The notes beneath the pieces were generated by a model. That model was not told the DNA's origin and ran no database searches. It worked only from the letters and a program-made list of their open reading frames with translations. A DNA stretch of 64,000 nucleotides from positions 248,001 through 312,000 of the forward strand of contig MCFH01000030.1 of assembly GCA_002104945.1 (NCBI GenBank). The letters are read 5' to 3'. This stretch comes from Piromyces finnis finn (Eukaryota; Fungi; Neocallimastigomycota). The translations under genes and the position numbers were made by a program. Within the stretch, counting starts at the first letter, position 1; each line of letters opens with the position of its first letter. Shown one piece after another: positions 1-43,445 of this stretch.

Positions 1-3000
1 TTTGTACCACAAATTAAAAGTGAAAATCCCGTTAATGATTTATCTGGGATTAAAAAATCTTCATATAATTTAGCACATGTGATATTTTCTTTTTCTAATT
101 AAAAGAAAATGGTAAATTATCATTTATATTGAAAAATTAACATTAAAAAAAAAATGAATTTTATAAAAAGCTTACTACATTCTTTCCAGATATCAATTAC
201 TGAACATGGGTTTGTTAAGGTTGAATATATCCATATTTCACCATCATATTTCAATATATATAAATAGTCTATATAAATATAAAATTATTAAAATCTTTTT
301 CTAATTTATAAAATGTATATAATAATTATAATAAATATTTACTTAAAGCTGGACTATACAAAACATCTTTTATCACTTCATTATCGATATATGGAATAGC
401 TGTGGTGATAATTTCACCTGTAATTGGGGATATTAATCGAATACCACCATCAAGGGTACGACAGACAACTCTATTTGGGCAATTAAAATTTTTACTAAAT
501 TCTAATGATAATGGTGGTGATCTTTAAATGTAAATTTATTTATGTATTTGAAAAGTTTGTTAATAATTTAATTATATGAAATAAATAAGATGATATAATG
601 TATGTCAGTTCGTAAAAAAAAAGTTATCTACTTTAATGATGTAAAGCAATCTGTAATGTTATTGAAATTCCAGAGGATAACTTCTCTTTCAGAATAAGTT
701 AAGAATTGATTTTCATCAATAATTTTAAGTCCATAAGAAGGTTCTTTTAAATATAATTTATATATTTCTTGAAAATTAACTAAATTAAATAAACGAATTG
801 ATCCATCAAAAGAAGCTGATAAAAATGCTGGTTTTCCTGGAACAATTTCCAATCCAGTAATGGCATTAGTATGATTATTAAACATATGAAGTAAATCATC
901 TGAACTGTTTCTTATTTGAACTATTTTTTTTTAAAAAAATATCATAAGAAAGGAAGAATCATCATAATAATTATACTATAGTTATTAATTACTTGATCCG
1001 TCAGCAATACCAATTATATCATATACAAAAGGATTATAAGAGGTAATACATGTTATAAATTTATTTGATTTATTTTTGAATCGTTTAATTTCTTTTCCTG
1101 TTTCAATATCCACTACCTTTTTATATTTAATTTGCAATAAAAGTTTTTTTTAGGATATATAGATTTATTATTATATATGTAAAAATATTTAATTTAGATA
1201 TTGGTATTGATTAAATATATATATATATGTATTTGTGTATGTAGTTTTTTGTAATTCAATTAATTTTGTTAAAATATTAAATTATTATAGAAAAAAAAAA
1301 GTTCATATTACAATAGCCATTTTTTTTAATATTAAATAAATTTTTGATGTAGGTTCATTTAAATAAACATTTTTAATCCATTCTTCATCTGGTAATTCTG
1401 TATTATATTCTAAACGTAATTTCTGAACTACAATTGTCTGTGAACTTTTTCTGGATTATATATCAAAAATAAAAACATTTTAATTAATTTGTATAAAAAA
1501 TAATTGTACATTTTTTTAAAAAAATATTCTTATATATATCAAAATACCCATTTGTTTCAATATCTAGTGAATAAAACTATTTATAATTATTAATATAAAA
1601 TTAATTTATATGATATTTATATATATATGGACTAAATTATATAATTGAAAATGATTATTTCATTACATTAACTTTATGAGCACCGATAGCAATTAATTCG
1701 TTCCTTGAATTATTATATTTTAAACTTTATCATGAAATATAACAAATATAATATTTTAATAAATATATATATTTATATTTATATTTTTTTTAATATTTTA
1801 GTCTATTAAAAGGTTGTCTATTTGATGTTATACTAACATATATACATTAAATTCTGTATGGAAAAAGGTATTTAGCTCAAATTTCGAATTAAATATCTAT
1901 ATATAAAATATTAATAGATAATAATTATATCAACATTTTTTTTTCTTTCATTCCAATGAATATATTTAATTATGATAAATCAATGTAGCAAAAATAAATA
2001 TATATTATATTTATTATTTACTTCAATCACTGTACTATTGGAACAAACAGCATAATGACCAACTTTTTCTAATAATACATAATTTGATAATTTTTCTTTT
2101 AGTTTTGCAGTTAAAACATGATTAACATTTGATGAACCATCAATATCCATAACATTAACAATATTTGAGTTATTTAAAATAGCCATTGTATAAAGATGAC
2201 GTTTTCTTTGTGTATTTATTAAATTTAATGAACTTTTAATTTCACTTGCGCGTATTTTACCTTCAGTAAAATGTGATGGTAATCGAACATGTTGATCTAC
2301 ATGTAAAATATGGTATTTTGAATAGAATACATATTTAGATATAAATCCATACTTTAATATGTATTGCTCTTGAAAGTTGCTGGCTATCTTTATAATAAAA
2401 CGAATTTGGTCTATATTATTTAGTTGATCTACTTCTAATTCTAATATATTATTATTATCTGATGCATTATTAGCTTCACTTAATTTTAATATAATTCTTT
2501 TATTTCCATTATTAGTATTTTCCTCAACTCCTTCTATTTTATTGATATCATCATTTTCACTTTCATCTTTATTTATTAGCTGTTCATTATTATCTTTTAA
2601 TGATATTTTATTATTTTTGAAATTTTCATCTACTTTAATATCACTAATAGATTTCAAAGATAGATCTTCAGTAATTTCAGAGTTATTGTTAGTTAAACTA
2701 CTTTCCATATTATTATTATTATTAATGTTGTTGTTATTGCTGTTATCATTGTTATCAACATCTTTATTAGTATTCATATTTTTTGATATTTGCTCATAAT
2801 TAATTAATTCTGGTTCATTATTAAAACTGACATTCTGCTTTTTTCTCTTTTCATTATTATTTTCATTTTTTAATTGTTGATTATACTCTGTAATAGCTTC
2901 AGTATCATTTTTATTATTAATATTCACATATAATTTTTCATCACCATTTTTTTCAGTAGAATTTTCATCTATTGATACAATTCTTGTCATATCATTTATA

Positions 3001-3062
3001 GATAATTTATTATTATTAATTCCATCATCGATAGTGTTATAATTATTTAAATTATTACTCAT
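1..3062 (-). CDS. Multi-exon WD40-repeat protein, WDR87/WDR97-like, with Asn-rich N-terminus; 3' end lies beyond window start
   Basis: Exon 1 is ORF 3062->~2022 with a GTAAAT donor. Later exons near 1850-1900, 1670-1710, 1310-1450, 990-1125, 630-920, 345-520, 170-265 and 1-90 translate to WD-type segments (HTNAITGLEIVPGKPAFLSASFDGSIRLFNL; NRVVCRTLDGGIRLISPITGEII; IWIYSTLTNPCSVIDIW). WD40 call is firm; the subfamily is from memory of the animal proteins and is less certain. Confidence 0.75.
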
Positions 3063-3934: not shown

Positions 3935-5679
3935 TTATTCCTTATCATTATTATCGCCGCCATGACATAATACTTTTATCAATACTATAAATATAAAAAG
4001 AAGTAAGATAATTCCTAGAGCATATAAGCATATAACCATACTTTTTTGGGTCCTTTTTTGATATTTTGTAGCTTTTGTTAATTGAACAGTAGCTTTTTCC
4101 ATATTAGTATCTACTTGTTCAATATTATAATCAATTCTGTCTAAAATAGTACCTTGATCAATAACCATTGTCTGCAGTTCTCTAAAAATACCTAATAATT
4201 CATTAATTGATTTTGAAATCTCATTTATTTCTTTTTCTCTTTGTGATACTATTTGATCTGTGGATCCTTCTTCCATTAATTGTAATTGATTACTTGATAC
4301 ATACTATTATTATTATTATTATTATTATTATTGATTTATATAATATTTCAAAAAAAAAAAAAAAAATAAAATAAAATAAAATAAAAAATTTATATTAGAA
4401 CTTATTCATTATTAAATATATTATTTAAATCATATATTTACCAATAATCCATCATCATCGTCATCATCATCAAAACCTGGTATCATTTTTTTTGAACTAA
4501 ATGGATCAGTTTGCATTAAACTATTATTTATTTTGGTTTCTTGGTTTCTTAATTCTATTATGTTTTTTTTATTTTGTATTATAATATATTTGAAAATATA
4601 AAATATTAATTATTTTATAATATAATAAGAATAAGATGTCGATATTAGATATTGTTAATAATTAATTATATTTATTATTATATTATAGTAAAAAATTGTA
4701 ATTACTTGATAAATATGAAGATTGTGTTTTCCTGAATATTTGTGATATATCTTGTATTTTAGTAGCTAAAGATACTTGTATATTTTTCTTTAATTTATTA
4801 GATTGAGTATTATCTGTTGTAACACCCATATTTTGGATTCTTCTTTGACACATTACAATATTCTAACATATTTTACAAAAAAAGTTTTAAATAAGAATTT
4901 ATATTTATTCAAGCTTTTTTTTTTCTGTTAAAAAAAATATCCTACAATAAACATACCTGGGTTATTTCATCAGTTTTTTCATTAATTAATCTTTCTTCTT
5001 CATCTTTATTTTCAAAATTTGGTATTAGATGTTTTTTGTGCATATCACTTAAAATATTTACTATTTAAATTATGATTATTAAAATATAAAATTAATATGA
5101 CTTTTTATAAATAAAATTTATCACTCTTTATTTTTAAGATATATTTAAAACAATATTTACTTTCTTTTGTTATGTTATCAACATTTTCATTTATCTATAA
5201 AAAAATGTAAATAATAATAATATTTAATTATGATTAATATATATACAATTTAAAATGAAAATATATTAATATATAATTAATTATATTATAACAAGTATTT
5301 ATTTATATTATACCTCATCAACTAAATCCATCCTTTTGTAATAAATTATCGATAATAATGAATAAGAAAAGAAAAAGAAAATTACTAAATAATTTAATGA
5401 ATTTATTTATTAAATTATTTATTATTTTTATATTAAATACCATAACGGTGGTAATGAACTTAATTCAGCCATTGGAATTATTTCTGGTTTATTACCGGAT
5501 TCTTTTATTATAAAATTATTATCTCTCTTAATTAAACCAACCATTTCTGAATCTATTCCTCCACTTGAATCATAACCTTCATTATTTACCGTAAGAGATA
5601 TAGCACCTGAATTTATTGTATTTTTTGAATATGTATTTCTATATTGGATAAATAATGCTTTTCTTGACCTTGTTGCCAT
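3935..5679 (-). CDS. TLG2: Syntaxin-16/Tlg2 Qa-SNARE (about 6 exons)
   Basis: N-peptide MATRSRKALFIQYRNTY, LPPLW motif, Habc exons (~5160-5210, 4960-5060, 4700-4860, 4440-4555), SNARE motif REKEINEISKSINELLGIFRELQTMVIDQGTILDRIDYNIEQ and C-terminal TM helix. Confidence 0.93.
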
Positions 5680-8366
5680 TTTGTATTATATTGTTAAAAT
5701 GATTATTTATGTTTTTTTTTTGTTTGTTTGTTTTATTTAATTTATTTTAAATTTATATACTGTTTTGTTTTATAATATTGCTTTGTTGATATGGATATAA
5801 TGCAATATATTACAGAAATTTGATTATATATGTAAAAGGAAATGAATGTCTTCGGTATATTTGATTGTTATAAAATAAAATGTTATAATTTTATTTTTTA
5901 ATTTATTGGAAAAAAAAAAAAAAAAAAAAAAGTTTATACAAATTTACTTTTCGTATTATAAAATTATATATAAAATTTAATATTGAATTTATTTTATTGT
6001 TGACATTCACACTCAATATTTTTATTTTTTATTGTTATTATATAAACAATATCTAAAAAAATGTTAATTAATAACAACAAAAATTATACTTTTCTTCTAT
6101 TTTTAAATTTTCTTTTATTATTTAATTGTTATAACTTTATCTTATTTTCATTTATTTATTTATTTATTTATTTATTTAAATATTGATATATAGAAATTAT
6201 ACATATACTAATAAAAAAAGAAAAAGAAAGAAAAAAAAAAACTTTAGATATTTATATATCCCTCTATAAAAATTTAAATCTTTCAAATGAAAAACTTTTT
6301 ATTTTGATAATATGACCATTGAAATTTTTAAAAGTTCAAATAATTATGATTTAATATATATAATATTACACCTTTATTTAAACTTTAATAAATAAAATAA
6401 AAAAATAAAAATATTTATATTTCTTTATTTTATTTACCTTTCTTTCTTTTCTTTTCTTTTCTTTTTTTTTCTTTTATTATTTTTTAATTATAAAATTAAT
6501 CTTTAAAAATATATAATATCTTTATTAAAGAAAAGTATTTATACTTTTATTAATGATTTTATTTATATATTTTTTTTGTAACAGATTAAATTAATTAATA
6601 ATAATAAACAGGATAATCTAAATTAATTTTTCTTTCATATACTGCTTCTGATTTATTCTGCTAATACACAAAATTACTAAAGATTATTTACTTTATAAAA
6701 TATATTATTAACAAATCTTTTTAGTTTTTTTATTTTTATTTTATTTTACTTTTATTATTTTTTTAACAAAATAAAAATTTATATAATTTAAATATTTTTT
6801 TATAAAAATAAAATTTTCAAAAATTTATAATATACATATGTTATTATACCCATTTTTTTTTATTCATTTTTTTAAAAAAGTACTTTTTTAATAGCTATAA
6901 AAACATAAAATATATTACATTAATGAAGTTTCAAAATATATAATATATCATTTTAAAAATAAAATAAAACGTTTATTTTTTTTATGAATATTATATTTTA
7001 TATTCTATATTTATATTGTAAAAAAAAAAAAATAGAATATAATTTTATGAAAAATAATGATTATCATTGTAGTTAATAGTTTCAATAGTAATAGTAGTAG
7101 AATTAAAATTATTGGTTTTTTAAAACAAAAAATAACTTGTCTTAATAATCATTTTTCTTTAAAAAAATAAGAGCAATAATTTTAATTACAATCATCACAT
7201 AATCATTCAACTTTTTTTAAGTAGAACTAATCTATTTTTATTTAACTTATAAAAATGTTTTATTTAAGTAATCTTTCCAAATATAAATAATTATTTTTAT
7301 TTTATTTATTATTATTTACCCAAATATTTATTATTTATTATATATGAATTATATATAAATAGTTTAATTGTTATGTTTATTTTGAATTTATATTTAATTA
7401 TAATGCTTTTTAACTTTATGATTTACTGTTAAGATATTCTTTCTTTTCAAAAAGTATGATATGTATATTATATTTTTTCTAACCCTAATTTTAGAAAAAA
7501 CAACATATTATTAAGCCTAAAAAGGATTTCGTTATAATAATTAAATTATTAAAACTTTTTATATGAAAACTGTATTCAAATAAATGAAAAAATGCCTTTT
7601 TTTCTATTTCAAATAATGCATTCATATTTAGCTTCGATTGGTGAATACTTTATTTACTTTATATAAGTATTTTAATAAACTTTTTTTTTTTTTTTTTTTG
7701 GCTTATAAAAAATAAATATATTTAAGTTTTAATTAAATAGTGCGGATATACCATAGCGGATTATAACGGAGTATTTTAACTATTATTACGCTAAATTTGT
7801 TTTATATACAATACTATAAATATACAATATTTTCTTTTAAAAAAGTATTAATTACTTAATAAACTCTTATTAAATTTTTTTTTTTACTAAAAATATATAA
7901 TACATAAAACTTTTTTTTATAAAGAAGAATCACCATAAACATTTATACTATAAATTTATGAAATTATAAAATATATTATAATATTAATATTTTATGTATT
8001 AAAATATAATTCATTTTAATATTAATTAAAAAAAAAACTATATAAAATATACAAATATTAAAACATAAAATAAAATATAATTAATTTGATTCTTAACATT
8101 TATATTTATAATAATTGAATATAAATGAAATAATCAATAGAAACAATCATAACACTAACTCATTTTTAACTCTCACTAATAATCTTTATATTCAACAATT
8201 TAAAATAAAGCAAGAATTTATATTCACTTAGACCCTGCATTTATTTAAACTTCAAAAAAGAAAAATAACTTTTTAATATAATAAAAAACGGTTTAGGAGA
8301 AAAATATAATACTTATACATAATAATAAATGTTTTATATATAATCTTTATTTTTAAAAAGTGTATA

Positions 8367-8606: not shown

Positions 8607-10556
8607 TTGTATCTTTTATATTTTAATAAAATATTTATATTTCTTGAAATGAAAATAATAACAATAATAAATTCTATCCTAAAATATCATTATAATTGTA
8701 GTTCATTATCTTTTTTTTTTTTGAGATAGTATTATCTTCTGATAAAATATTACATTAATTAAATCAGAAATACCTAAACATTATAATTAATAAGTAGAAA
8801 TATTAAAATAAATGAACATTTTTTTAACATTTAATCATTTCTAATTCAATAAATATAACATTATTATATTATTATAACTTCCTAAGTTTTGAAAAAGTCT
8901 AATTCAATTAAATGTTTATTATAAATTAAAATTTAAAAAAGAGAAATTCTTTGTTATAAATTTTAAATTAATGTAATTTTAATTAATAATAAAATTTAAT
9001 ATTTAACTCTTTAATTTTTAAAACATTTTTAAAAAAAAAAATTTATATTTAAAAAAAAATGTTATTTTTAAGAAATAGGAAACATTAATTATTATAAAAT
9101 TAAAATAAAAATAAAATAAAAACTTTTTTTTATGTATAAGAGAAAAGAAAGAAGAAAAAAATACTTTTATATAAACTCCTCTCTGATTAAGGCTTTTGGT
9201 TCAACCCCACATAAGTTAATTCTACTATAGAAAAGATTTATGGGTACTTACCATATTGTAATAATAAGTAATAATAAGATATTAACATTTTTCTGTGAAT
9301 TACCATTAGAATTGTTCTAATAAATAGAAAGGGTATACTCGGACATTATAATAAGTAAATCCTGATTAATTAATTTTTTCTAATTATAATAACTGGTTTT
9401 AAAAATTCTTTTAATTATTTTTTTTTTTTTGTTTTATTTCTGTTTATACCATTTCTTTTAATCTTTTGTTAAAATAACATATATGATTTAATTATTTTCT
9501 ATTTTTTCTTTTTATTTAATATTTATAATTTGGTAAGTAAAAAAAAAATCCATTTTTATTTAATGGGATTATAGTATATTATTTCTATATTTAGAATTAA
9601 TTTCTATTTTACTAACTAAAAAAAAAAAATGTTTAAAATAAATAGTCTTTTTATGATATAAAAATCTATTTTTATATTTTGATGTTTGATCTATAAATTC
9701 AATGTGGAATACATTACATTCATTAAATGTAAACAACATTTTTATGATCACATGACATAAATCTCATTTTATAACTTTAAAATTCATGGGGTAAACTTTC
9801 TTCTTTTCATTTGAAAAGGCTAATAAATTACTTTTCATTTAAATTTTTTTGCCAAAGTAATTTAATTCAAAGTAGATTATTTTATTATCCTAACATAAGT
9901 TGTTGAAAAATTAATTAAAAAGTAAATTATAAAATTTTTATATTCATAATTTTTTTAAATAATTCTAAACAAATAATAATTGTGTGTATGTGTGTGTGGG
10001 GGGGAATATAAATATAAATATTAGTTAATAAATAAATAAATGAAAATTGAATAATAAACATAAATGGAATTCATAAGAAATTGACATTTGAAATAACAAT
10101 AATGAAAACAGCAATATTAATGATAATAAGTTAAAGATAATTAATAAAGAATATGAATATTAGACTCAGTGGTAAAGAATTAATTCTTTTTTAATTAATA
10201 ATAAAATTAAAATAAAGTAATAATTAACAATTATAACAATTGCAAATGATAAAATAAATAAGAGTTAATAAAGGATAAGTATAAAAAAAATTTTTTTTAT
10301 TTAAATTAAAATAGATTTATAAAAATAAAATATGAAGTTAAATAGTTAATGATAAACAATGCAATGACAATACAATGATTATCAGTATTATTTTATTATA
10401 TAATAATTGCTAAATTAAAAATTATTATAAACATTAATTGAGCTATTATTATTAACTATATTTTTATATATTTTTTTATAATTAATACAATTAATATTGA
10501 AAATAAATGTAAATAAAACCTCTATTATATTAAATCAATAAAAATAAGAAATAAAA

Positions 10557-12563
10557 ATGTCAAAGAAAATACTGGAACCAATTAAGGTTGGAAACATGAC
10601 CTTAAAAAATCGTATCATGTTTCCACCATTAACTACAGGTTATGAAGAAAGAGATGGATCGATTGGTGAACGTAGTTTAGGTTTTTATGAAAGATTAGCA
10701 AAAGGTGGTACATCTTATATTGTTGTTGGTGATGTTGCTCCGGTTAAAACAGCTTCTCCAACACCAAAATTATTTGATGATAGTCAAATTCCAATGTTTA
10801 AAAATTTAGCAGATATATTACATAAATATGATGCAAAGGTTGCTCTTCAAATTTTCTATCCAGAATATGATGTTTTCGGTGTTGGTAAATTAATGGTTCA
10901 AGCTGGTATGACTAGACAAGCTGCTGCTAAAGCAAAAGCAGAGGGTAATGAAGAAGAAGCTTTAAAACAAACACAAATTGCTGAAAAGGTTACTAAAGAA
11001 GCCTATGCAAAATTACATTATGATATGCAACATTTTGTTTCAGAAGCTTCTATTGAGCAACTTCAGCAAATTAAGAAATCTATTGCTAGTTGTGCTACAA
11101 GAGCTCAAACTGCAGGTGTAGATGCAATTGAAATTCATGGAGATAGATTAATAGGATCCTTATGTTCTTCCTTATTAAATCATAGAACTGATAATTATGG
11201 TGGTGAATTTGAAAATCGTATTAGATTTGCTATTGAAGTTGTTGAAGCTATTAAAGAAGCTGCCCCATTACTAACCATTGAATATAAATTACCAATTATC
11301 ACTGTCAATCCAAATGGATCATTAAGAGGTAAAGGTGGATTAGAAGAAGATGAAGGTATTCAATTTGCAAAAATTTTAGAAGCTCATGGTGTTCATATGA
11401 TTCAAGTTGCTCAAGCCAATCATACCGGTAATATGGGTGATACTATTCCACCAATGGGTGATCTTCCATATAATTGGACCTTACCTGTAGCTAAAAGAGT
11501 AAAGGAAGTTGTCTCAATCCCAGTTATTACTGTTGGTCGTATTATTTCAGTAGAAATGGGTGAACGAATTTTACAAAATGATGAAGCTGATATCATTGGA
11601 TTTGGTCGTTCTTCCTTAGCAGACCCTGATATTCCAGTTAAAACCGAAAGAGGGCAATGTATTAGACAATGTTTAAATTGTAATAAAGGTTGTGTGGATG
11701 CTCTTCAAGGTAGAAGATATGTTTCTTGTGTATTAAATGCTGAAAATGGTAATGAAACAACTACCTTTATTACTCCAGCAGAAACAAAGAAAAATGTCGT
11801 TGTTATTGGTGCTGGTATTGCCGGTTTAGAAGCAGCAAGAGTAGCAGCTGTTAAGGGTCATAAAGTTACTTTATTTGAAAAGGAAGATAAAATTGGTGGA
11901 CAAATCAATATTGCTGCCGTTCCACCAAGAAAATGCGAAATTCTACGTTCTATTGAATATTATGAAAAGGTAATGCCAGAATTAAATATTACACTTAAGC
12001 TTAATTCAATAGCTAGCATAGAAGAAATAAATACCTATGATGTATGTATTGTTGCCATTGGTGCTCATAATATGCCACTTCCAATGAAGTCTGAAAATTC
12101 CAATGTAGTTTCTTCTTGGGAAGTATTAAAGGGAAAGGAAGTTTCCGGAGATTGTGTTGTTTTAGGTGGTGGTTTAGTTGGAACAGAAACAGCTGAATAC
12201 CTTGCAACTCATGGTCATAATGTTACTATTATAGAAATGATGGATAAAATAGCTTCTGGTGAATCCGCTACTGTCCTTCCATTAATAATGAAGAGCTTTG
12301 CTAAATACAACGTTAAACAATACGTCAATACTAAAGTAAATGAAATTAAAGATAACACTATCTATGCTACAAACACAACGGATAATACTGATATTGAAAT
12401 TAAAGCAGATACAATCATCAATGCTTTAGGATCAAAAAAGAATTCATTCGATGAAACTGGAATAACTGTTCCATTATTCTATGTTGGTGATTGTTCAGGT
12501 GAAAGAACTTCAGATATAGCTTCTGCTATTCGTTCTGCCTATAAAACTGCTAACAGCATTTAA
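10557..12563 (+). CDS. bilR: Old Yellow Enzyme-family NADH:flavin oxidoreductase, long form (FMN barrel + 4Fe-4S + FAD/NAD(P) domains); probable bilirubin reductase BilR of bacterial origin
   Basis: Intronless 668 aa. N-terminal KNRIMFPPLTTGYEERDG; HGDR at aa 194-197 (nt 11136-11147) within IEIHGDRLIGSLCS; Fe-S motif CLNCNKGC-x11-C; GAGIAG and GGGLVG nucleotide-binding motifs; PEYD, AKLHYDM and QANHTGN segments resemble Firmicute BilR as I recall it. Confidence 0.85.
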   Translation: MSKKILEPIKVGNMTLKNRIMFPPLTTGYEERDGSIGERSLGFYERLAKGGTSYIVVGDVAPVKTASPTPKLFDDSQIPMFKNLADILHKYDAKVALQIFYPEYDVFGVGKLMVQAGMTRQAAAKAKAEGNEEEALKQTQIAEKVTKEAYAKLHYDMQHFVSEASIEQLQQIKKSIASCATRAQTAGVDAIEIHGDRLIGSLCSSLLNHRTDNYGGEFENRIRFAIEVVEAIKEAAPLLTIEYKLPIITVNPNGSLRGKGGLEEDEGIQFAKILEAHGVHMIQVAQANHTGNMGDTIPPMGDLPYNWTLPVAKRVKEVVSIPVITVGRIISVEMGERILQNDEADIIGFGRSSLADPDIPVKTERGQCIRQCLNCNKGCVDALQGRRYVSCVLNAENGNETTTFITPAETKKNVVVIGAGIAGLEAARVAAVKGHKVTLFEKEDKIGGQINIAAVPPRKCEILRSIEYYEKVMPELNITLKLNSIASIEEINTYDVCIVAIGAHNMPLPMKSENSNVVSSWEVLKGKEVSGDCVVLGGGLVGTETAEYLATHGHNVTIIEMMDKIASGESATVLPLIMKSFAKYNVKQYVNTKVNEIKDNTIYATNTTDNTDIEIKADTIINALGSKKNSFDETGITVPLFYVGDCSGERTSDIASAIRSAYKTANSI

Positions 12564-14085
12564 AGAAAAAAAAAAATCTTTTTTCTATAAATCTCTTTTT
12601 TAATTATAATAGAAAATCATTATAATATTTATGATTTATATTAAAAAAAAATTATTGAAATAATAATTCATAATAAAAATAAAATACCAATACTAAATAA
12701 TAATAGAAGTAGTAATTTATATCAAAAAATTATATTATAATGATACCAATACTAATAAATCATCATTATTATCATTATTGCTATATAATAATAATAAAAA
12801 AAAAAGAAATCCTAAGAAATAAGGAATTATTTATAATAGTTAAAATTCAAATATATTAACTATATATATATTTGAAGGCCATTTTATTTTAAATCCATCA
12901 TTTTTTATTATTTCCTTTATGAAAAATATTAAAATTTTTAAAATTTTTTTGATCATAAATGAAAAAGTACTAAAGTTGATGAAAGGTTTAGTATTATTAC
13001 TATTGAATTTATTATTACTATCATATGTACATAATAAATGTTTTCACTGAAGTTTGTTTTATTAAACTTTGTTTTCGAAATAACTAAGCATTATTATAAT
13101 AAAAACATATTCCTATATTATAATAAATACTAATATTGCTGTTCCTTTTCTTAAAAAACTATTAATCTTTTATATAATTCTATATATGACTATTGTTAAT
13201 AAAGGAATGAAGAAGATGAAAATATATTAATATCTATATATATAATCATTAATGATAATACTCTTTCATTCTTCCTATTAATGTTATTTTCAAAAAATAT
13301 TTAATAAATGTTTAATTTTTTTTAGTTCACCAGTAAATCAAATTTAACACAGAAAATATGCAATTTAAAAAAACTCTTAATATAATTCTTTACTATTAAA
13401 ACCATTACTTTAATATATAAATAATATTTATTGTTATAATTCATTATTTAAAAGTTGAAATACAAAAAATTATCATAATTAGAACCATAAAATCTCATTA
13501 AAAATATTACTTTTATTTAAATAATAGTAGTAATATTTCTATTTATCTTGTTTATAATATAAAATTTTTATAATATTTTTAAATTTAGTCTTAATAATTA
13601 ATTATTTTTCAAATACTTTTTCCTTTATTTTTTCTTTAATTCCTAAATAGACTCATATTAAAATTATTTATAACTAAATTAATATGCCAAAAAAGGAAAG
13701 TTTTAAATTGCTTTTTTTTTCATGTTTATTTTTTTTTATCCTATTAATTTAGAGATGCATTTTATTTAGAAATAGATTAAAATTTAATACAATTATAATA
13801 GATTAATTTATTTAATCCTATATTACAATCTAATCAAATTTATATTATAAATAAATTAATTAATTTATAAAGTTATTGAATTATTTTCATTTTGGTAAAT
13901 ATTTACATAATATATTATTATAATAAATATATATTAATTATATATAGTCATAATATAAACCACAATATATTATTTTTAATTTTTAATATTTTATTTTATT
14001 TTTTCCATTCATAAATGATTTTATAATAAATAAACTTTTTTTTAAAAGAGATTAATCCATATAAAGATTCACAAGAATTTATCAT

Positions 14086-14220
<135 letters not shown>

Positions 14221-14804
14221 ATTATATTTTATTATTATATTTATTATAATAAATTTTGAAATAAAGATGAAATATGATTTTATTATATTTACATGAACAA
14301 ATAGAAATAAAATTTATTAAGATAAAATAAAATAAAAAAATTGTTTTTTATGTTCATTTTTTTTTCTTCTTATTTATACTTTTACATTATTTTGCAATTG
14401 TATAATTAATAATAGGAAATTATAAAAAAAAATTCACTGAGAAAAATTAAATTTAGAGAAATTTCACATTAAAAAAAATATTGGTAATATAAACTATATA
14501 TTAAAATTCATGTTATAAATGTTATTAATGTTCAAATATATTTATACTTTATAAAACAATTTTCTTTTTATATAAGACTTCTTAGTTGGTAATACAGAAT
14601 CATTTAAATTCTTAAAAGGCCTTTTTTTTTTTTTTTTTTTTTTCTATCTTTTAAATAATAACAAAATATTGTATTAAATTACAAAAATTTTTTAAAAGAT
14701 TTTTTAAAAAAAAAAGGCTATATTAAATATTGTAAATTATTTTAATAGCAAGTCGAGAAAATAAAATCAATACAATTTATTAATAACAATTTAATATTTT
14801 CAAA

Positions 14805-16650
14805 ATGTCAACAAGTGAACAACCAGAAATTAATGTAACCACAATTCCAGTATCTTTCAATGAAGAAGATGGTACTGATTCAGAATCTGATTCTTTTGTT
14901 TCAATGTCTTCCGCTTCTTCCAATTCTGTAATTGATGATAGTACAAATCAAGATGATAAAGAAGAAAAGGAAGAACAATTAAAATTATTAAAATTACAAA
15001 AAGAACAACAAGAAATGAGAAAAAAAATTATGGATGTTCAAAGAGACCCAAATCTTACTGAATCACAAAAAGCAAAGAAAATTCAAGTAATGATGCATAT
15101 AATTTTTATATATATATATAATTTTATAAAGAATTGAGTATAGATAAAATATTCTATAAAGTATTTAAAAAAATAAATACAAAAATTTTATAACAGAAGA
15201 TAAATTAAATTATTAAAATTTATTTATTACTTTCAATAACATGTAAATCCATAATAATAGGAAATTATGACTTTCCAATATAAAACTATTAAACACATTA
15301 ACACTCATTTAGAACATAAAGATATTGATTTAGATTCACCTTTAACTGATGAGGATAAGGCTCCTACTTATAATGTATTTATATTATTTATTTTTTTATA
15401 TTGCTTTTTCAATATACATACATGAAAATGAAATTTGTGAAAATAAAATTATAATAAAAATTCTTTGTTGAAAATGTATATTAAATTTCAAAATAATTAC
15501 TTTTTTCTATAGGATGAAGAAAATAAAATATTAGGTTGTAAACATTATCAAAGAGCTATCAAGTTCCAAGCTAGCTGTTGTGGTAAATGGTTTACTTGTC
15601 GTTTCTGTCACGATGCAACCTCTGACCATGAAGTTGATAGGTAAATTTAATATTAATTCTATGCATAATATTTTATATTGTATTTTTGATATATACTGTA
15701 GTATAGTTTTTTTTTTAATATATTATAATAATATTAATTTACATATTATTTATTTATTCATTAGAAAAAAAACCACTAGAATGATGTGTATGTATTGTAA
15801 TACTGTCCAACCAGCTGGCCAAAATTGTATCAATTGTGAACGCTGTTTAGCCAAATATTATTGTGATAAATGTAAGTTATGGGACAATGAGCCAAGAAAG
15901 AGCATTTATCATTGTGATGATTGTGGTATATGTAGAATTGGAAAAGGTCTCGGTGAAGACTATTTCCATTGTAAAAAATGCAATGCTTGTTTAGCTATCA
16001 GTTTAAAAGACAATCATAAATGTATTGAACGTAACTTAGAAAGTAACTGCCCAATTTGTGGTGAATATATGTTTACATCTACATCTATTGTTATATTTAT
16101 GGTAAGAAAATAATATTTGTTATTTTATATAATGTATTATTTCAATTTCCAGTTTACCAATTTTTTAATTCATTATTATAATATAAATATATTTCTTTTA
16201 AAGCCATGTGGTCATTGTATTCACTATAAATGTCACCAAGAATATATCCAAACTAATTATCATTGTCCAACTTGCTTCAAATCTCTTGCTAATATGAATG
16301 AGTACTTTAGAAGAATTGATACCATGCTTCAACAACATAAAATGCCACCTGAATATGAAAACTGGCATAGTTATATTTTATGTAATGATTGTGAAAAAAG
16401 AAGTTATGCTAAATATCACTTCTTATATCATAAATGTGCCTATTGTTCAAGTTATAATACGAAGGTTTTAAAAACATATGAAACCAGTAAATCAATCCCA
16501 TCTATCACTGATACTATTGCATTATCTACAAATACAGATGAAAATGAACATTCCAGTGAAAATGCAAATGATGCTTCAACCTCAAATGAAAATAATGAGA
16601 ATAACGGACAAAATTCAAATAACGAAAATACCACCACTAACGAAAACTAA
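14805..16650 (+). CDS. RCHY1: RING finger and CHY zinc finger protein (Pirh2/RCHY1-like E3 ligase), 5 exons
   Basis: Exons approx. 14805-15086, 15260-15373, 15513-15640, 15766-16101, 16204-16650. CHY domain LGCKHYQRAIKFQASCCGKWFTCRFCHD; CPICGEYMFTS...PCGHCIHYKC...CPTC RING; C-terminal zinc ribbon LCNDCEKRS...LYHKCAYCSSYNT. Confidence 0.95.
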
Positions 16651-29105: not shown

Positions 29106-32100
29106 TTAAAAATTTTCATTATTTTTTGCTTCTAATTGTTCAACTAACGAATCACATATTTCAACAAGTTCCATATTTTCATTAGTTTTGGTATCATATT
29201 CTTCTTTTAATATTTTATACATTCCTTGTAAGGATTCATTATTTAATTGAGTTTTCCTTATTTTCGCTTCATAAATCGATATTTCTTGATCTCCTCGTTC
29301 TTTTTCTTTATTAATTTCTGAGTGTGCTCTATATTGTTTTTTTTTTTTTTTTTTTTTTTTTTTATTTATAAAAAAAAGGTTTATTAGTTATTCTGATAAA
29401 AAAAAAAAAAAAAGTAATATAAAAGAAAATAATTAATTATTTCTTGTCAATATTAAAGTTATATTTACACTTTTATTTTTGATTCAACATGTTCCAATAA
29501 ACCTTTACATCTCTGATTTGCAAATAATACGTCATTCTGAAGACTATCAATATTATCTTGTAGTATTTTTTTATTCTATTTAAAATGTTATATAATATAA
29601 AATAATTTGAAAATTATAATAATATTTATTAATATTATATTAAATATTAGTATAATCAAATGATATTATATATTATTTGATTATATCTTAATCTTAATAA
29701 TGAACTATTTAGTATTTTTTCATTAATTACCTTTACAAATTGAATGTTTTGTTTATTCATTTGATTATAATGAGATTGGATTTCATTAAAAGCCATTGAC
29801 ATTACTTCAGACTCTCTTTTTAATCTGTTAATTTCATTTACCAAGTGCTCAATTTGAATATTATTTTTCTCTTTTATTTTATTGGTATCATCAATCATTT
29901 GAGTAATGGTAAGTTCATATTCATCAAGGGTATCTTTGATCATTTCCTGTTTGGATAATGATTTATAATAATTTTCTTCAAACTGCATTTTTTTATTTAA
30001 TTCCATTTGTATTTCCTTCTCATACTATCATAAAATAAAATTATATATTATAATAATATATATATATAGATTTGGGTAATAATAAATAAAACTTATTAAT
30101 CTGTTGAGCTTATACTTTTATATATATATATAATATAAAAATTGTATTTTTACCTTTTTTTGAATTTCTAACTTAATTTGTTCTATATAATCATCTGGTA
30201 TTGATGGTGAATCCTTTTTATCTATATCTTTATCATCTTAAATAATAAAATGAAATAATAGGAGTGAGAAAAAAAAAATTTTTTTTTCTAACTATATATA
30301 ATGTAAATAATTACCCAAATTATCATTTTCGACATATTCAACATCACTACTATCTACTTCTAGATTTGGTTCAAATAAGGTAATAACACTATCACTATTT
30401 CTTTCATCATAGCAATTATCAAAAGAATAACTGCTATCATCTATCTCACTAAATGAAGGATAATTAATACTGAAACTTTTTGGTATACTTTCATGAACGA
30501 AATTACTCTTTGGATATAATGATACATTTGAAGAAGAGGATGAACCATTTTTTATTTCTTCTACTAAATTAGTCGAATTCATTGACAAATTATCTTGATT
30601 GATATTAAAACCATTCTCATTCTTTTTAGGAAATTCTACTTTTTCTTCTTTCGGTATTTTAGCATCATTATTTTCAATTATATCTTCTGATATTATATGA
30701 TTTGTATTTATTTGTAATTCCTCTACATCCTGAGCAATAATTTCTTCATTAATTAATTCTGCTTCTGATATAAAATGCTCATGAGCATTATCATCATTTT
30801 TTATATTATTAATTATATTTATTTCATTTTGCTGTAAATTGGAATTACTTTCTGATTGTTCTGTTTTAATATTTTTTGATATAATATTGTTATCTTGAAT
30901 TTTAAACTCATTATTTTCTTCATTTGATTTTTCCTCTTTATCATTAGATTCTACTAATTTATCATCAATAAGAAAATTTGAATTTACTTCATGGTTATCT
31001 TGTTCATAATTATTTAATTTATTTGATTTATTTTTTTGTATTTCAATATTATCAGATTCTTTATGCCATTCAATATCATGGTTTTCTTCTAACTCTTCAT
31101 ATATATTATCATTTTTTCTTAACAATTCTTTTGATTCATCATTTGTTTTTATAATATTTTCCATGATTTCACTTTTATTATCTTTTAATGTTCCCAATTT
31201 ATTTTTCTTATTAGAAACTATTTCACTATTTTCTAATAGTTTAGATTCATCTTTAATTTGATCATTTAACTGTTCACTCAACTGTTCTAATGATTTTACC
31301 TCTTCCTTTGAATTATTATTATTATTAATAATAATACTATTTAATATTAATGATTCATCATTCTTTTGACTTGATTCGTCAGCAAAATATTCATTATTAT
31401 TTTCAATAACTATATTATGATCATTTTCTAGTTTAAACTGTTGAAATTTTTCTTGTATATCTTCTATTTCTTTTGACTTTTCTAAATCTTTCAATTTATC
31501 GTTATTTTGTTTTAAATGATTGGATTTTTCAGGATTTAATGTATTATTTTCACAGTCATCACTATTAATTCTCTTAATAATAGCACTTTCTTTTGCTTCT
31601 TGTACCTTTTCTAAATTATTATTCTTATTATTGTTTTCTTTTTCTTCTATATAATTATCTATTTTTGTTTCAATATCATCATTAATATTTTTATTTTGTT
31701 TATTTTTTATTTTGGTTGTTTTATCTATATCATAATGTTTTGATAAATATTCATTAAATTCTTTATCGCATTCTGAATAGAAATTGTTGACTATATCTTG
31801 TTCTATAGTTTCAATTTTATCTATCTTTGTTTTAAGGACGTTGATTGAAGAAAAATCATTAACAGTTTTAGAATCATAATCTTTAATTTGATTTATTATT
31901 TCATTATTATTTAATTGCTCTTGCATTTCTTCCTCGTTTATCTGACCATCATTTTGTGGCTCATCCAATAGTCCTTCCTTTATAGGAATATCATCTTCAT
32001 TTAAATGATTAATGTTTTGATATTCAGTATTTAATACTTCAATATTATATTCATTTGTTTTATCCTTTTGAATAATTTCTATAAACTTTTGAAATTCAGT

Positions 32101-33549
32101 ATTTCCGCTTAACTGTTTTGAAATATTATTATTTATGTTTTGTTTTTTGACAGTATTTCTAATTGAATTATCTATATTAAATTGTTTTCTTGAACTTTGT
32201 GAATCTGCTATAATATTTTCATCAATGTTAGATTGGCTTTTATCATATTTTACAGTATTAGGATCAATGCTTATGGTTCCACTATTTATACATTCTATTT
32301 TTTCACTGTTATCATTATTATTAATTACTACTACATTTTGACTTTCATCAAACATTCGTGAATTAGTAGCATCATATTTATCATTTGTAGATGCTATTGA
32401 ATTATCTATAGTTATTATTGGAGTATTTGGAGTTTTTTCATAATCGTTTTTATTACTGTTTTGTATGTCAAGATATTTTTCTTTAATGAAACTAATTCGA
32501 TGACTAATATTATTGGAATTTAAGATATCAAATTCAAAAACAGAGTCTGCACTATCAATACTTTGATTCATTTTATTAATAATGGGATCAGTCATTTCTT
32601 CGGTTAAATCTGAAATTTCTTTTGAAATATAAAAAAAGTTTTTATTACTGTAATTATCAAATCTACCACCTGATAACCTAAATTTATTATCATATATTTC
32701 TCTTTCATTCAAGCTATCAAAATAATTAACTGCAGGTTTAAAATTAGGTGTTTTACTAATTTTGGTATTTAAAATTAAATTTTCTTTAAATATACTGTCA
32801 GTTTCAATATTTGGTTCACTTTTACAGCTATGAATGGAAGGTGATTTTTTATGAAATGATGATATCATTGGTTTTAAATTATTATCACTTTCCAAACCAT
32901 CTAAAAATGATGTTTTATTTATTTTTTTCTTAAATAACAAGTCAATATTATCATTTGGAAGAGCATAATTTGATTTCTCATCATTCTCAATAATTTTTTT
33001 CTTACTATCTATTAATGGATTACTATTATTATTAGATATGATTTTACTATCACTTCCTTTTAAATCAGATAGTATATATTTATCCTTTTTTTGTCTATTT
33101 TTCATATTTTTATTGTCTTTTATATTGTTGATTTGAGAAGATAAAAGAAAATTTTCTGTATTTGAAGTAATATTATTGATTGTAATGTCAAAATCAGAAT
33201 GTTTAAGAGTATTATTTTTTAACGATAGAGTTTCATTTATAAATATGTTATCATTAAAATCTGGTTTTTCATAATTACTTGTATTATTGTTTTCATTACT
33301 GCCATCTTCGTAAGATATTATATAACTATTTTCTGAAATATTTAGTGAATTCATTTTATCTGATAAAAATTTATTTATAAAATCATCATTTTCAAATTTA
33401 AAATTTTCATTTCTATTTGAGATTTCTTGTTTATACCCTACATTGTTATTTGAATTTGTTGATGTTCCAATAATATCGTTTGACCTTTTATTTTTATTGA
33501 ATATACTTTTCAATTTCTTATTATCATTAATTTTAATATTTTTCTCCAT
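29106..33549 (-). CDS. TACC-domain (transforming acidic coiled-coil) protein with very long N/E/K-rich disordered first exon
   Basis: Exon 1 33549->30315 (GTAATT donor); further exons near 30155-30240, 30090-30110, 29660-30030, 29460-29575 and 29106-29335. The C-terminus KTNENMELVEICDSLVEQLE matches the TACC C-terminal signature (cf. ENEELTKICDELI), preceded by a coiled coil. Confidence 0.75.
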
Positions 33550-41792: not shown

Positions 41793-43445
41793 ATGCAAAG
41801 CATTATAGCATTCTCTGAATTAAGATCTTTCATCTATAGTCAAAAGTATGATACTTATCAAACTATAATTGAAAGCTTTATAAGAAATGACTACTTTCCA
41901 TGGGTTTGCTTAATTCTTTTGTTCAATAGAAAAAATTGGAAAAGACCAATTACCATTATTTTAATTGTTCATTGGTTTTTAAGATCCATTGGTGATAGTT
42001 TAAACAATCTCCTTCCATTAAGACCATGGGTTCCAAATACCTACTGGCCATATACTAATGAAAATTGGTTTATTTGTTGTGCATTAGCCAATGTATTTTG
42101 GTTATCTGGTGAAATTGTTGGTGATTGGTATGCTCTTTTAAGAACAAAAGCAGTTACAAATAATAATAAAAAAGTAAGACTTGTTTATGTTACTGTTATC
42201 ATCTACAACTTAGTCAAATGCCTAAATATGTACTGCAATTTCATGGATTTACCTTTTGACTTAAGATTACAAGATGAAGAAGGAAATCTTGTTAAAGATA
42301 TTGCTAGATTTAAAATTCATTGGTGGTCAATTGTTAGTATTATGCAAGTTGCAAGTTTTTTATATGATTTATCAGTCATATTTGCTTTAAAAAAGTGTCT
42401 TTTCAACAAACTAGAACAATATCAAGGTTTCAGTGGAAACACTTTCTTAAATAAATTTAAACAAGTTTCAGAATTCCGTATTATTATCTCAATGATTGCT
42501 TCTATTGCATTTTTACCATTTGTTGGTCTTTTCCTTTATTATGTTATTCATGAATACCATAGTGACAGTGCTGTTAGTTACATTCCTTCTGATGAAACCG
42601 TTGATTATCTCCGTCGTGTGGTTCTTAATTTCAATTACACCTTAATGTATATTGATCAAATATTATTAAAAAGTATCTCTGAATCAAAGTCTCAACCAAA
42701 AGTTTCATATGGTGCTAACTCATCAAACAACAGTTCTTATCATAATATTAATATTAATCAAAATGATTATCGTAAAAATTCAAATTCTAATATATCACCC
42801 CAAAGTATTATTTCTAGTAATAATGCTAGCATATCTGTTCCACAAAAAGTAATTAACAATGAAGTTATTAATACTTTTAATAATAATTATAAAGCCAAAA
42901 ATAGTAACGAAGATTTATCTGGAATGTATTTTAATAATGATAATAATAATAATAAGCTTAATTACTGTCAAGAATATAAAATTAATATGACTTATTCAAA
43001 CAATTTATACTCTAGTACAAATATTAATAATTATAAGTTCCAAAATAATAATATGTATGATATGAATGATAATCAAACTTTTGTTAATGCTGATGATAGC
43101 TACAACCATAAAAAGGTCTTTTATAATGATAATAATATCAATAACAAGCCAAGTAATGCATATTATATAAAATTAAAGAATTCAGAAAATTTAGTAAACA
43201 AAAATAATTACAATAAAGAAGCATCATTATCATCACCTTCTTCATATGAAACATTATATAATGATTCAAATTCTTCCATTAATATTAATGATGATATTAA
43301 TTATATTATGCCTCCTATTAACAATAATATCATTGTTAAAGATAATGGAAACAATAATGATAAATTATTATTTAAAAAAAGAAATGAGAAGTGTGATTCT
43401 ATTTATGATTTATACTCTCAACAATCTCAACAAAAGCAATATTAA
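41793..43445 (+). CDS. Intronless orphan multi-pass (about 7 TM) membrane protein with Asn-rich cytoplasmic tail; GPCR-like topology
   Basis: 550 aa; hydrophobic segments near aa 30-45, 52-70, 92-116, 130-150, 175-199, 230-252 and 277-293; low-complexity N/S/Y-rich C-terminal ~250 aa. Confidence 0.8.
   Translation: MQSIIAFSELRSFIYSQKYDTYQTIIESFIRNDYFPWVCLILLFNRKNWKRPITIILIVHWFLRSIGDSLNNLLPLRPWVPNTYWPYTNENWFICCALANVFWLSGEIVGDWYALLRTKAVTNNNKKVRLVYVTVIIYNLVKCLNMYCNFMDLPFDLRLQDEEGNLVKDIARFKIHWWSIVSIMQVASFLYDLSVIFALKKCLFNKLEQYQGFSGNTFLNKFKQVSEFRIIISMIASIAFLPFVGLFLYYVIHEYHSDSAVSYIPSDETVDYLRRVVLNFNYTLMYIDQILLKSISESKSQPKVSYGANSSNNSSYHNININQNDYRKNSNSNISPQSIISSNNASISVPQKVINNEVINTFNNNYKAKNSNEDLSGMYFNNDNNNNKLNYCQEYKINMTYSNNLYSSTNINNYKFQNNNMYDMNDNQTFVNADDSYNHKKVFYNDNNINNKPSNAYYIKLKNSENLVNKNNYNKEASLSSPSSYETLYNDSNSSININDDINYIMPPINNNIIVKDNGNNNDKLLFKKRNEKCDSIYDLYSQQSQQKQY

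Follow-up and report, generated by a model that had tools for sequence, protein, structure and literature searches.

A candidate bilirubin reductase (BilR) gene of probable gut Bacillota origin in the gut fungus Piromyces finnis

A single unbroken open reading frame of 668 codons, with an ATG start and a TAA stop, was identified at 10557..12563 on the plus strand of the window (the whole 64-kb stretch of Piromyces finnis DNA that was analyzed, part of a contig of 631,782 bp). As the sequence-only reading had reported, its product carries the active-site sequence IEIHGDRLIGS, in which HGDR corresponds to residues 194-197 (nt 11136-11147). Based on the base composition of the flanks, a 668-codon frame would stay open by chance with a probability of approximately 1e-32. 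From residue 1 through the end, the ORF aligns collinearly with bacterial homologs of 668 aa, and bilR is thus intronless and without an N-terminal extension. The following features were assigned:

10557..12563 (+): complete intronless bilR of the BilR-insertion subtype (ORF; NCBIfam NF045599; AlphaFold model, pLDDT 94.1)
10557..11741 (+): predicted FMN-binding TIM-barrel (Old Yellow Enzyme, OYE) domain, residues 1-395 (PF00724 and NF045592)
10914..10997 (+): 28-residue insert, residues 120-147, marker of the BilR-insertion subtype (alignment A1, model)
11136..11147 (+): HGDR active-site motif, H194 G195 D196 R197 (equivalent to R. gnavus H164-R167)
11670..11729 (+): predicted four-cysteine 4Fe-4S cluster motif, C372, C375, C379 and C391 (conservation in alignment A1)
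11802..11825 (+): predicted FAD-binding GxGxxG motif, VIGAGIAG, residues 416-423 (conservation; Pfam Pyr_redox_2, residues 413-636)
12159..12182 (+): predicted NAD(P)H-binding GxGxxG motif, VLGGGLVG, residues 535-542 (conservation; Pfam Pyr_redox, residues 534-601)
10200..10556 (+): AT-rich upstream flank, presumed fungal promoter and 5' UTR, without a Shine-Dalgarno site (sequence)
12564..13000 (+): AT-rich downstream flank, presumed 3' UTR, without a bacterial terminator (sequence)

The surroundings of the gene are those of a fungal chromosome, in agreement with the earlier description of AT-rich host flanks, intron-split neighbors and no bacterial signals. The GC content is 14.5% in the 2 kb upstream and 12.3% in the 2 kb downstream, versus 33.6% in the ORF. 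The neighbors are eukaryotic genes divided into exons, among them one with a SNARE-domain exon (3935-4276, minus strand), a gene for a CHY/RING zinc-finger protein (15580-16650, plus strand) and, in the same window, TRAPPC10 (56298). The 30 nt preceding the ATG are A/T-rich and contain no GGAGG-like Shine-Dalgarno site. Neither an intrinsic terminator nor an Rfam family was found around bilR, and promoter-like matches near it were not in excess of the shuffled expectation. None of the flanking sequence showed mobile-element boundaries, just low-complexity repeats and an (AAAT)n tract, while a tblastn search of the 64 kb revealed no remnant of bilV, the operon partner of bilR in bacteria, nor any other bacterial gene.

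Transcription was investigated using four RNA runs from three studies, which span 2016-2022 and were taken together irrespective of library type (poly(A) or not). All four contained 100% of the words of the ORF and 58-65% of those of a 3.5-kb stretch of which the ORF makes up 56%, so that they hold approximately 80-330 nt of AT-rich flank beyond the ORF, summed over both sides. Every sampled 31-mer across both ORF/flank junctions was present in a DNA run. With its linkage to the flanks resting on these k-mer shares and on the assembly, bilR is an intact, transcribed nuclear gene of P. finnis, a species which was isolated from horse faeces.

The product was assigned using profile, phylogenetic and structural approaches. 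It scored 1029.2 bits with NCBIfam NF045599 (BilR long form; cut-off 750) over the entire 641-position model, and 505.4 bits with NF045592 (bili_reduct_N; cut-off 425) over residues 4-394. The E-value of the latter, 8.7e-152, is below the E < 1e-100 of the BilR profile criterion in Hall et al. 2024, here applied with the NCBI model and not with the HMM of that paper. Pfam matches to PF00724 (residues 5-366) and PF07992 (residues 413-636) correspond to the expected domains of the BilR long form; the remaining matches were overlapping Rossmann-type models in the same stretch as PF07992. In a FastTree phylogeny of 232 rows, the node uniting all 172 HGDR rows had a support of 100 and a branch length of 0.33. 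This clade contains the window protein and just four non-HGDR variants, and excludes the AHAH-bearing BilV rows. Two other identities were considered and rejected: the BaiCD bile-acid Fe-S flavoenzyme (NF041087), whose score of 388 bits falls short of the 825-bit cut-off, and BilV itself, based on the lack of an AHAH motif, 30% identity to the operon BilVs and a position outside the BilV clade.

The window protein retains 240 of the 249 near-invariant BilR columns; the nine changes are all conservative, compared to zero to seven changes in 25 randomly picked bacterial rows. Three of the four cluster cysteines (C372, C375, C391) are invariant in alignment A1, and C379 is nearly so; likewise G418, G420 and G423 of the FAD motif and G537 of the NAD(P)H motif are invariant, with G538, G539 and G542 nearly invariant. 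The sites for the 4Fe-4S cluster, FAD and NAD(P)H therefore lie on invariant or nearly invariant columns, the FMN site being judged at the level of the fold. The identity proposed by the sequence-only reading, which had pointed to profile models and an OYE-family tree as checks, is borne out by scores above both cut-offs, the HGDR motif and nesting in the HGDR clade, and assignment of the product as a BilR-clade enzyme is supported.

Where that reading had placed the protein with the fused long form of R. gnavus, a 28-residue insert points to another subtype. Residues 120-147 are missing in BilV and in the non-insertion HGDR representatives (motif at 164-170; alignment A1), whose identity to the window protein is just 36-45%, and in the predicted model they lie in a helical hairpin formed by helices 106-128 and 132-163. 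BilR-insertion enzymes are distinguished from the basal and short forms by an extra TIM-barrel segment, as the definition of Dufault-Thompson 2024 is relayed in Jiang 2026, and residues 120-147 constitute such a segment.

The closest relatives of the protein are BilRs of gut Bacillota, which are 73-75% identical, mostly from Erysipelotrichaceae and located in bacterial operons. In an IQ-TREE phylogeny it was nested among Bacillota BilRs within a clade of support 100/99, with a sister group containing Faecalibacillus (92/81) and a long terminal branch of its own (0.29 substitutions per site). The Firmicute origin proposed earlier thus stands, while the donor is most likely not one of the Clostridia named there but a low-GC gut Bacillota of an Erysipelotrichaceae or Faecalibacillus-like lineage, a placement which is moderately resolved in the trees. 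All of the nearest bacterial relatives have a bilV-bilR operon with bilV immediately upstream of bilR; the fungus has bilR without bilV within the 64-kb window. Nesting in a bacterial clade, embedding in fungal DNA and transcription, the marks of a horizontally acquired gene in Neocallimastigomycota, were all found (the linkage again from k-mers and assembly).

Codon usage, which had been described as AT-ameliorated, proved not to be discriminating and was dropped as evidence of transfer. At 0.141, the GC3 of the ORF falls within the values spanned by its closest bacterial counterparts (0.094-0.193), and the AT-rich codons are no evidence of amelioration since donor genes share the same GC3; the fungal bilR could not be separated from low-GC Erysipelotrichaceae donor-type genes. 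A weak C>G trend at third positions was the sole host-like codon signal.

Searches of protein (5.8 billion sequences), genome (185,579) and metagenome (241 million records) collections revealed no bacterial match above 75% identity (77% over the barrel half), nor a second fungal copy above these values. Among the best 120 length-filtered matches to the TIM-barrel half, no fungus-named protein was observed down to 54% identity; a fungal homolog measuring 631-1169 aa with 55-70% identity may have escaped this search. BilR was identified in 2024 and has been described from bacteria only in the literature searched, in which no link of BilR to fungi or any eukaryote was found; nor does the P. finnis gene figure in the searched text of gut-fungal HGT surveys. 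Within these databases and this literature, it would be the first BilR gene in any eukaryote.

Among known systems the nearest is the Faecalibacillus BilR (F. faecis cluster P0104), a BilR-insertion enzyme of near-equal length (659-668 aa) in the sister group, which is 73% identical to the window protein and has in common with it HGDR, the insert of 28 residues and every cofactor motif. Its gene is located in an AraC-bilV-bilR operon, whereas the fungal bilR is monocistronic in AT-rich eukaryotic DNA. The characterized long form from Ruminococcus (Mediterraneibacter) gnavus reduces the methine bridges of bilirubin and shares the OYE/4Fe-4S/FAD-NAD(P)H architecture and HGDR, its D166/R167 corresponding to D196/R197. 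It is without the insert, since its numbering puts HGDR 30 residues earlier. BilV (bilinoid vinyl reductase) shares the overall fold and domain order with the window protein, but has AHAH in a longer loop in place of HGDR and, at 30% identity, is outside the HGDR clade. The AlphaFold model of the window protein (pLDDT 94.1) matched 2-naphthoyl-CoA reductase and dienoyl-CoA reductase (FadH) with TM scores of 0.82-0.83. These enzymes use the same FMN/4Fe-4S/FAD electron path; they differ in their CoA-thioester substrates, approximately 25% identity, lack of the insert and another proton-donor site (Y166 in FadH).

Within the BilR clade, HGDR is "nearly universally conserved" (PMC10769871). The essential arginine claimed by the sequence-only reading is not established for that residue alone, since the published loss-of-function mutant of R. 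gnavus BilR is the double mutant D166A+R167A (PMC10769871). Reduction of bilins by BilR holds, but not the whole route from bilirubin to urobilinogen. Based on two 2026 preprints, BilR alone reduces just the methine bridges, converting bilirubin to divinyl-urobilinogen and mesobilirubin to urobilinogen, and bilirubin reaches urobilinogen only with BilV in addition. Urobilinogen was formed in E. coli carrying the bilR-bilV operon of Faecalibacillus intestinalis, where the whole operon was tested (Jiang et al. 2026). Biliverdin is also accepted by BilR (2026 preprint), and its substrate scope is therefore not narrow.

We consider it likely (probability about 0.7) that P. finnis acquired bilR horizontally from a gut Bacillota donor and that this nuclear gene encodes a bilin-reducing BilR-insertion enzyme. 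The donor would have carried a bilV-bilR operon from which bilR alone was taken. The product would be a flavo-iron-sulfur BilR-insertion enzyme with three domains, in which FAD of the C-terminal domain takes up electrons from NAD(P)H and hands them on, via the 4Fe-4S cluster, to the FMN of the TIM barrel, from which a hydride is delivered to a bilin C=C bond, with the HGDR-loop pair D196/R197 as the putative proton source. Bilirubin, and probably biliverdin too, would yield divinyl-urobilinogen, while mesobilirubin made by bacterial BilV could be converted to urobilinogen by the fungal enzyme. The protein is probably cytosolic because it has no N-terminal extension. The horse hindgut receives bile, and the fungus may benefit by detoxification or through a minor NAD(P)H sink. 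If this is correct, a eukaryotic microbe is directly involved in vertebrate bile-pigment turnover, and since it took bilR without bilV it would be reliant on bacterial partners to finish the route to urobilinogen. Gene transfer into gut fungi would then not be confined to the digestion of plant fibre but would also concern how metabolites from the host are handled. The fungal gene would also provide a natural monocistronic BilR-insertion enzyme, useful for probing the role of the insert.

An expressed BilR-clade enzyme need not act on bile pigments, and a less likely alternative is that its substrates are diet-derived linear tetrapyrroles, such as the chlorophyll-derived phyllobilins or phytochromobilin, or other activated alkenes, with a role as general ene-reductase or electron sink. 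BilR-insertion accounts for 82-100% of bilR in herbivore guts, yet herbivores excrete little bilirubin; the acceptance of biliverdin, the absence of bilV from the window, the long fungal branch and the presence of chlorophyllase xenologs in other gut fungi point the same way. Unchanged chemistry is argued by the 240 of 249 near-invariant positions kept, HGDR included. In addition, no BilR is known to act on phyllobilins, and bile pigments do arrive in the gut of the hindgut fermenter from which P. finnis came. The narrower proposal that the fungal BilR, perhaps together with the whole herbivore-dominant BilR-insertion group, works mainly on diet-derived linear tetrapyrroles, e.g. phyllobilins, is improbable; were it true, the transfer would be an adaptation to plant eating and not to host haem waste.

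That bilR is a decaying relic, transcribed into a product which is no longer an active enzyme, is very unlikely. Confinement to a single species, loss of the bilV partner, the long branch and nine changes at near-invariant columns, more than in any of the 25 bacterial rows, are consistent with decay, but the changes are all conservative, the 668-codon frame is open against odds of approximately 1e-32, the catalytic and cofactor motifs are all intact and the structure model is confident. An assembly chimera, or a bacterial contaminant joined into the fungal contig, has hardly any probability left: it agrees with an intronless gene, bacterial-type codon usage and the lack of another fungal copy in the databases searched, but not with the missing bacterial neighbor, Shine-Dalgarno site and terminator, an ORF which directly borders DNA of 12-15% GC (the lowest GC at related bacterial loci is 27%), the complete junction 31-mers in DNA, full ORF and flank words in RNA from three studies, or the lack of any bacterial match above 75% (77% over the barrel half), on account of which a culture contaminant would be odd.

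Returning to acquisition from gut Bacillota, OYE+Pyr_redox_2 xenologs with the same Pfam architecture as the window protein are known from A. robustus and N. californiae (Cluster_480 of Ciach et al. 2024), a cluster in which P. finnis is not included. They are absent from the best 120 matches to the TIM-barrel half (down to 54% identity) and probably belong to another OYE subfamily. These xenologs and other bacteria-derived genes of Neocallimastigomycota are, like bilR, intronless or intron-poor and of gut-Firmicute origin.

The BilR-clade gene (bilR) occupies positions 10557-12563 of the forward strand as one open reading frame of 668 codons, with an ATG start and a TAA stop. In the flanks, 43% of the bases are A and 43% are T; with this composition about 10% of random codons would be stops, giving a chance of about 1e-32 for an open frame of 668 codons. 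The active-site sequence IEIHGDRLIGS was located in the product, residues H194-G195-D196-R197 being encoded at nucleotides 11136-11147. Pfam searches assigned residues 5-366 to Oxidored_FMN and residues 413-636 to Pyr_redox_2. Scores of 1029 bits (cut-off 750) and 505 bits (cut-off 425) were obtained with the NCBIfam models for bilirubin reductase long form (NF045599) and bilirubin reductase N-terminal domain (NF045592), respectively; the next-best family, BaiCD, scored 388 bits, below its cut-off of 825. Published rules for BilR membership comprise a strong profile match, the HGDR motif, and PF00724 with or without PF07992 as the sole domains (PMC10769871), and the protein shows all three.

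A family tree was constructed from 232 rows, 172 of them bearing HGDR. The latter share a single common ancestor (support 100), the window protein lies deep within this clade, and the rows with AHAH, the corresponding motif of the bilinoid vinyl reductase BilV, fall outside it. Both the uninterrupted 668-aa frame with its IEIHGDRLIGS site and the BilR identity, as proposed from the sequence alone, were thus upheld, the first by the read-out of the frame and the second by the two profile cut-offs passed and the nesting in the HGDR clade. At the 249 columns conserved in at least 98% of 200 BilR sequences, the fungal protein retains 240 residues, and all nine changes are conservative. The four cysteines of the cluster, like both GxGxxG motifs, are on invariant or nearly invariant columns. 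Four 50% representatives inside the HGDR clade (P0137, P0140, P0125 and P0135) carry QGDR/NGDH-type variants or lack the motif, and may be members of the BilR clade whose chemistry has changed.

The AlphaFold model of the protein (mean pLDDT 94, pTM 0.90) resembles 2-naphthoyl-CoA reductase and E. coli dienoyl-CoA reductase with TM scores of 0.82-0.83; no BilR structure was found among the PDB sequence or fold matches. A 28-residue insert (residues 120-147) inside a helical hairpin is absent from the non-insertion HGDR representatives and from BilV, which assigns the gene to the BilR-insertion subtype. In gut metagenomes of herbivores, this subtype accounts for 82-100% of bilR (PMC13252198).

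The best database matches show 73-75% identity, and most have a length of 659-668 aa. The closest copies in named genomes belong to Erysipelotrichaceae, Lachnospiraceae, Eubacterium and unclassified Clostridia MAGs, all of animal or human gut origin. All contexts inspected were bacterial, consisting of dense operons with PTS, TetR or AraC genes, with the AHAH-type paralogue (BilV) directly upstream of bilR; among the first 85 loci, an AHAH paralogue stands beside the HGDR gene in 28. Bacterial sister loci (L166 804-5887, L169 1934-6998 and L003 4068-8658) have a conserved AraC-bilV-bilR order, or bilV-bilR-TetR in others. One contig, L011 (CAVESC010000152.1, 33% GC), is filed in a Bacteroidaceae bin, is near-identical to an Erysipelotrichaceae MAG contig (L012), and is probably mis-binned.

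In a 41-row IQ-TREE analysis, the fungal protein formed a single branch of length 0.29 within a Bacillota clade supported 100/99. Its sister (92/81) is a group including a Faecalibacillus faecis cluster, annotated by NCBI as bilirubin reductase long form, and a 59-row quick tree agreed with this placement. This nesting among bacterial relatives gives the direction of transfer as bacterium to fungus, as the sequence-only reading had supposed. The exact donor is only moderately resolved by the tree, and the length of the branch speaks against a very recent transfer.

Contaminant bacterial DNA was weighed as the alternative. The AT-ameliorated codons earlier offered as evidence of residence in the fungus did not hold up: GC3 of the ORF is 0.141 versus 0.094-0.193 in the nearest bacterial genes, the donor lineage also being low-GC, so codon usage cannot separate a fungal gene from a contaminant; the one host-like trait is a faint C>G preference at third positions. 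Against contamination, GC is 33.6% in the ORF, 14.5% in the 2 kb upstream, 12.3% in the 2 kb downstream and 19% in the whole window, and no related bacterial locus comes near the AT-richness of the flanks (lowest GC 27%). The claimed absence of a Shine-Dalgarno site or bacterial neighbour gene was confirmed, as no ribosome-binding-site-like sequence precedes the ATG and neither a bacterial neighbour nor a trace of bilV occurs in the 64 kb. No intrinsic terminator was found at bilR, and promoter-like matches around it did not exceed the shuffled expectation. In a DNA run, all sampled 31-mers were present across a 3.5-kb stretch including both bilR junctions. Four RNA runs of this organism, drawn from three studies (2016, 2017, 2022), contained 100% of the ORF words and 58-65% of the 3.5-kb stretch, of which the ORF makes up 56%; transcripts therefore continue for roughly 80-330 nt within the AT-rich flanks. 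Searches of the protein database, of 185,579 genomes and of the metagenome collection gave no bacterial sequence exceeding 75% identity (77% over the barrel half). Contamination is argued against by the flank GC, the lone gene, the DNA and RNA words and the lack of a closer bacterial sequence. That bilR is a genuine gene of the fungus, belongs to the BilR clade and came from bacteria is strongly favoured, and the full explanation of bilR is given a probability of about 0.7.

The gene is carried on a contig of 631,782 bp, and the neighbouring genes are eukaryotic and exon-split. Features identified in the window were:

3935-4276, reverse strand: last exon of a SNARE gene, with SNARE domain and transmembrane tail
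4683-5679, reverse strand (that of the SNARE exon): small ORFs, possible further exons of that gene
14805-16650, forward strand: intron-split CHY/RING zinc-finger gene, Pirh2/RCHY1-like, about 2.2 kb downstream of bilR
41793-43445, forward strand: 550-aa membrane protein without Pfam domain
56298: TRAPPC10 fragment

The reverse-strand region 3935-5679 is a syntaxin-like t-SNARE gene, possibly of at least three exons. The 550-aa protein is a member of a large family specific to gut fungi and has several paralogues on this contig that NCBI lists under Piromyces finnis; its best orthologue is from Piromyces sp. E2 (62% identity), further relatives occur in Anaeromyces, Neocallimastix and Orpinomyces, and its ESM Atlas clusters fall in Chytridiomycota. 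Its features in the Atlas are similar to those of fungal GPCR or pheromone-receptor clusters. Long Asn-rich ORFs without Pfam match were observed at 30292-33549 (reverse strand, 1085 aa) and 1980-3062 (reverse strand, 360 aa). An (AAAT)n microsatellite at 14085-14225, whose reverse complement recurs near 6142-6191, produces spurious long inverted repeats around bilR.

Gene transfer from Firmicutes into anaerobic gut fungi is common, which makes the mode of acquisition unsurprising; what is new, and easily testable, is the identity of the transferred gene. No link of BilR to fungi or any eukaryote was found in the literature searched, nor any mention of bilR in the consulted portions of the horizontal-transfer surveys of gut fungi. 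No fungus-named protein occurred among the best 120 full-length matches or the best 120 matches to the TIM-barrel half (candidates of 198-630 aa, down to 54% identity). Ciach et al. (2024; supplementary file 1, Cluster_480 and Cluster_54) reported gut-fungus xenologs of two kinds: OYE+Pyr_redox_2 proteins (ORX75477.1, ORY36419.1, ORY11776.1) in Anaeromyces robustus and Neocallimastix californiae, the nearest donor being Lachnospira pectinoschiza, and Chlorophyllase2 proteins with Faecalibacterium-like donors. The absence of the former from the best 120 barrel-half matches suggests that they represent another OYE subfamily. As far as the present evidence goes, the BilR gene is confined to the P. 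finnis lineage.

Judging from the homologous FadH-type enzymes and from published work on BilR, electrons would pass from NAD(P)H through FAD, 4Fe-4S and FMN to the substrate, with D196/R197 as the proposed proton donor. According to two 2026 preprints, BilR converts bilirubin to divinyl-urobilinogen and mesobilirubin to urobilinogen, BilV reduces the vinyl groups, and a short-form BilR also accepts biliverdin. Given this division of labour, a fungus with bilR alone would form divinyl-urobilinogen from bilirubin or would finish urobilinogen from bacterially supplied mesobilirubin. The protein start is in register with those of the bacterial relatives, leaving no targeting extension, and the enzyme is probably cytosolic. 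The source of P. finnis was horse faeces (PMC5168858), and since the horse is a hindgut fermenter, this habitat lies downstream of the bile duct. For the fungus, the gain may be detoxification or a minor electron sink.
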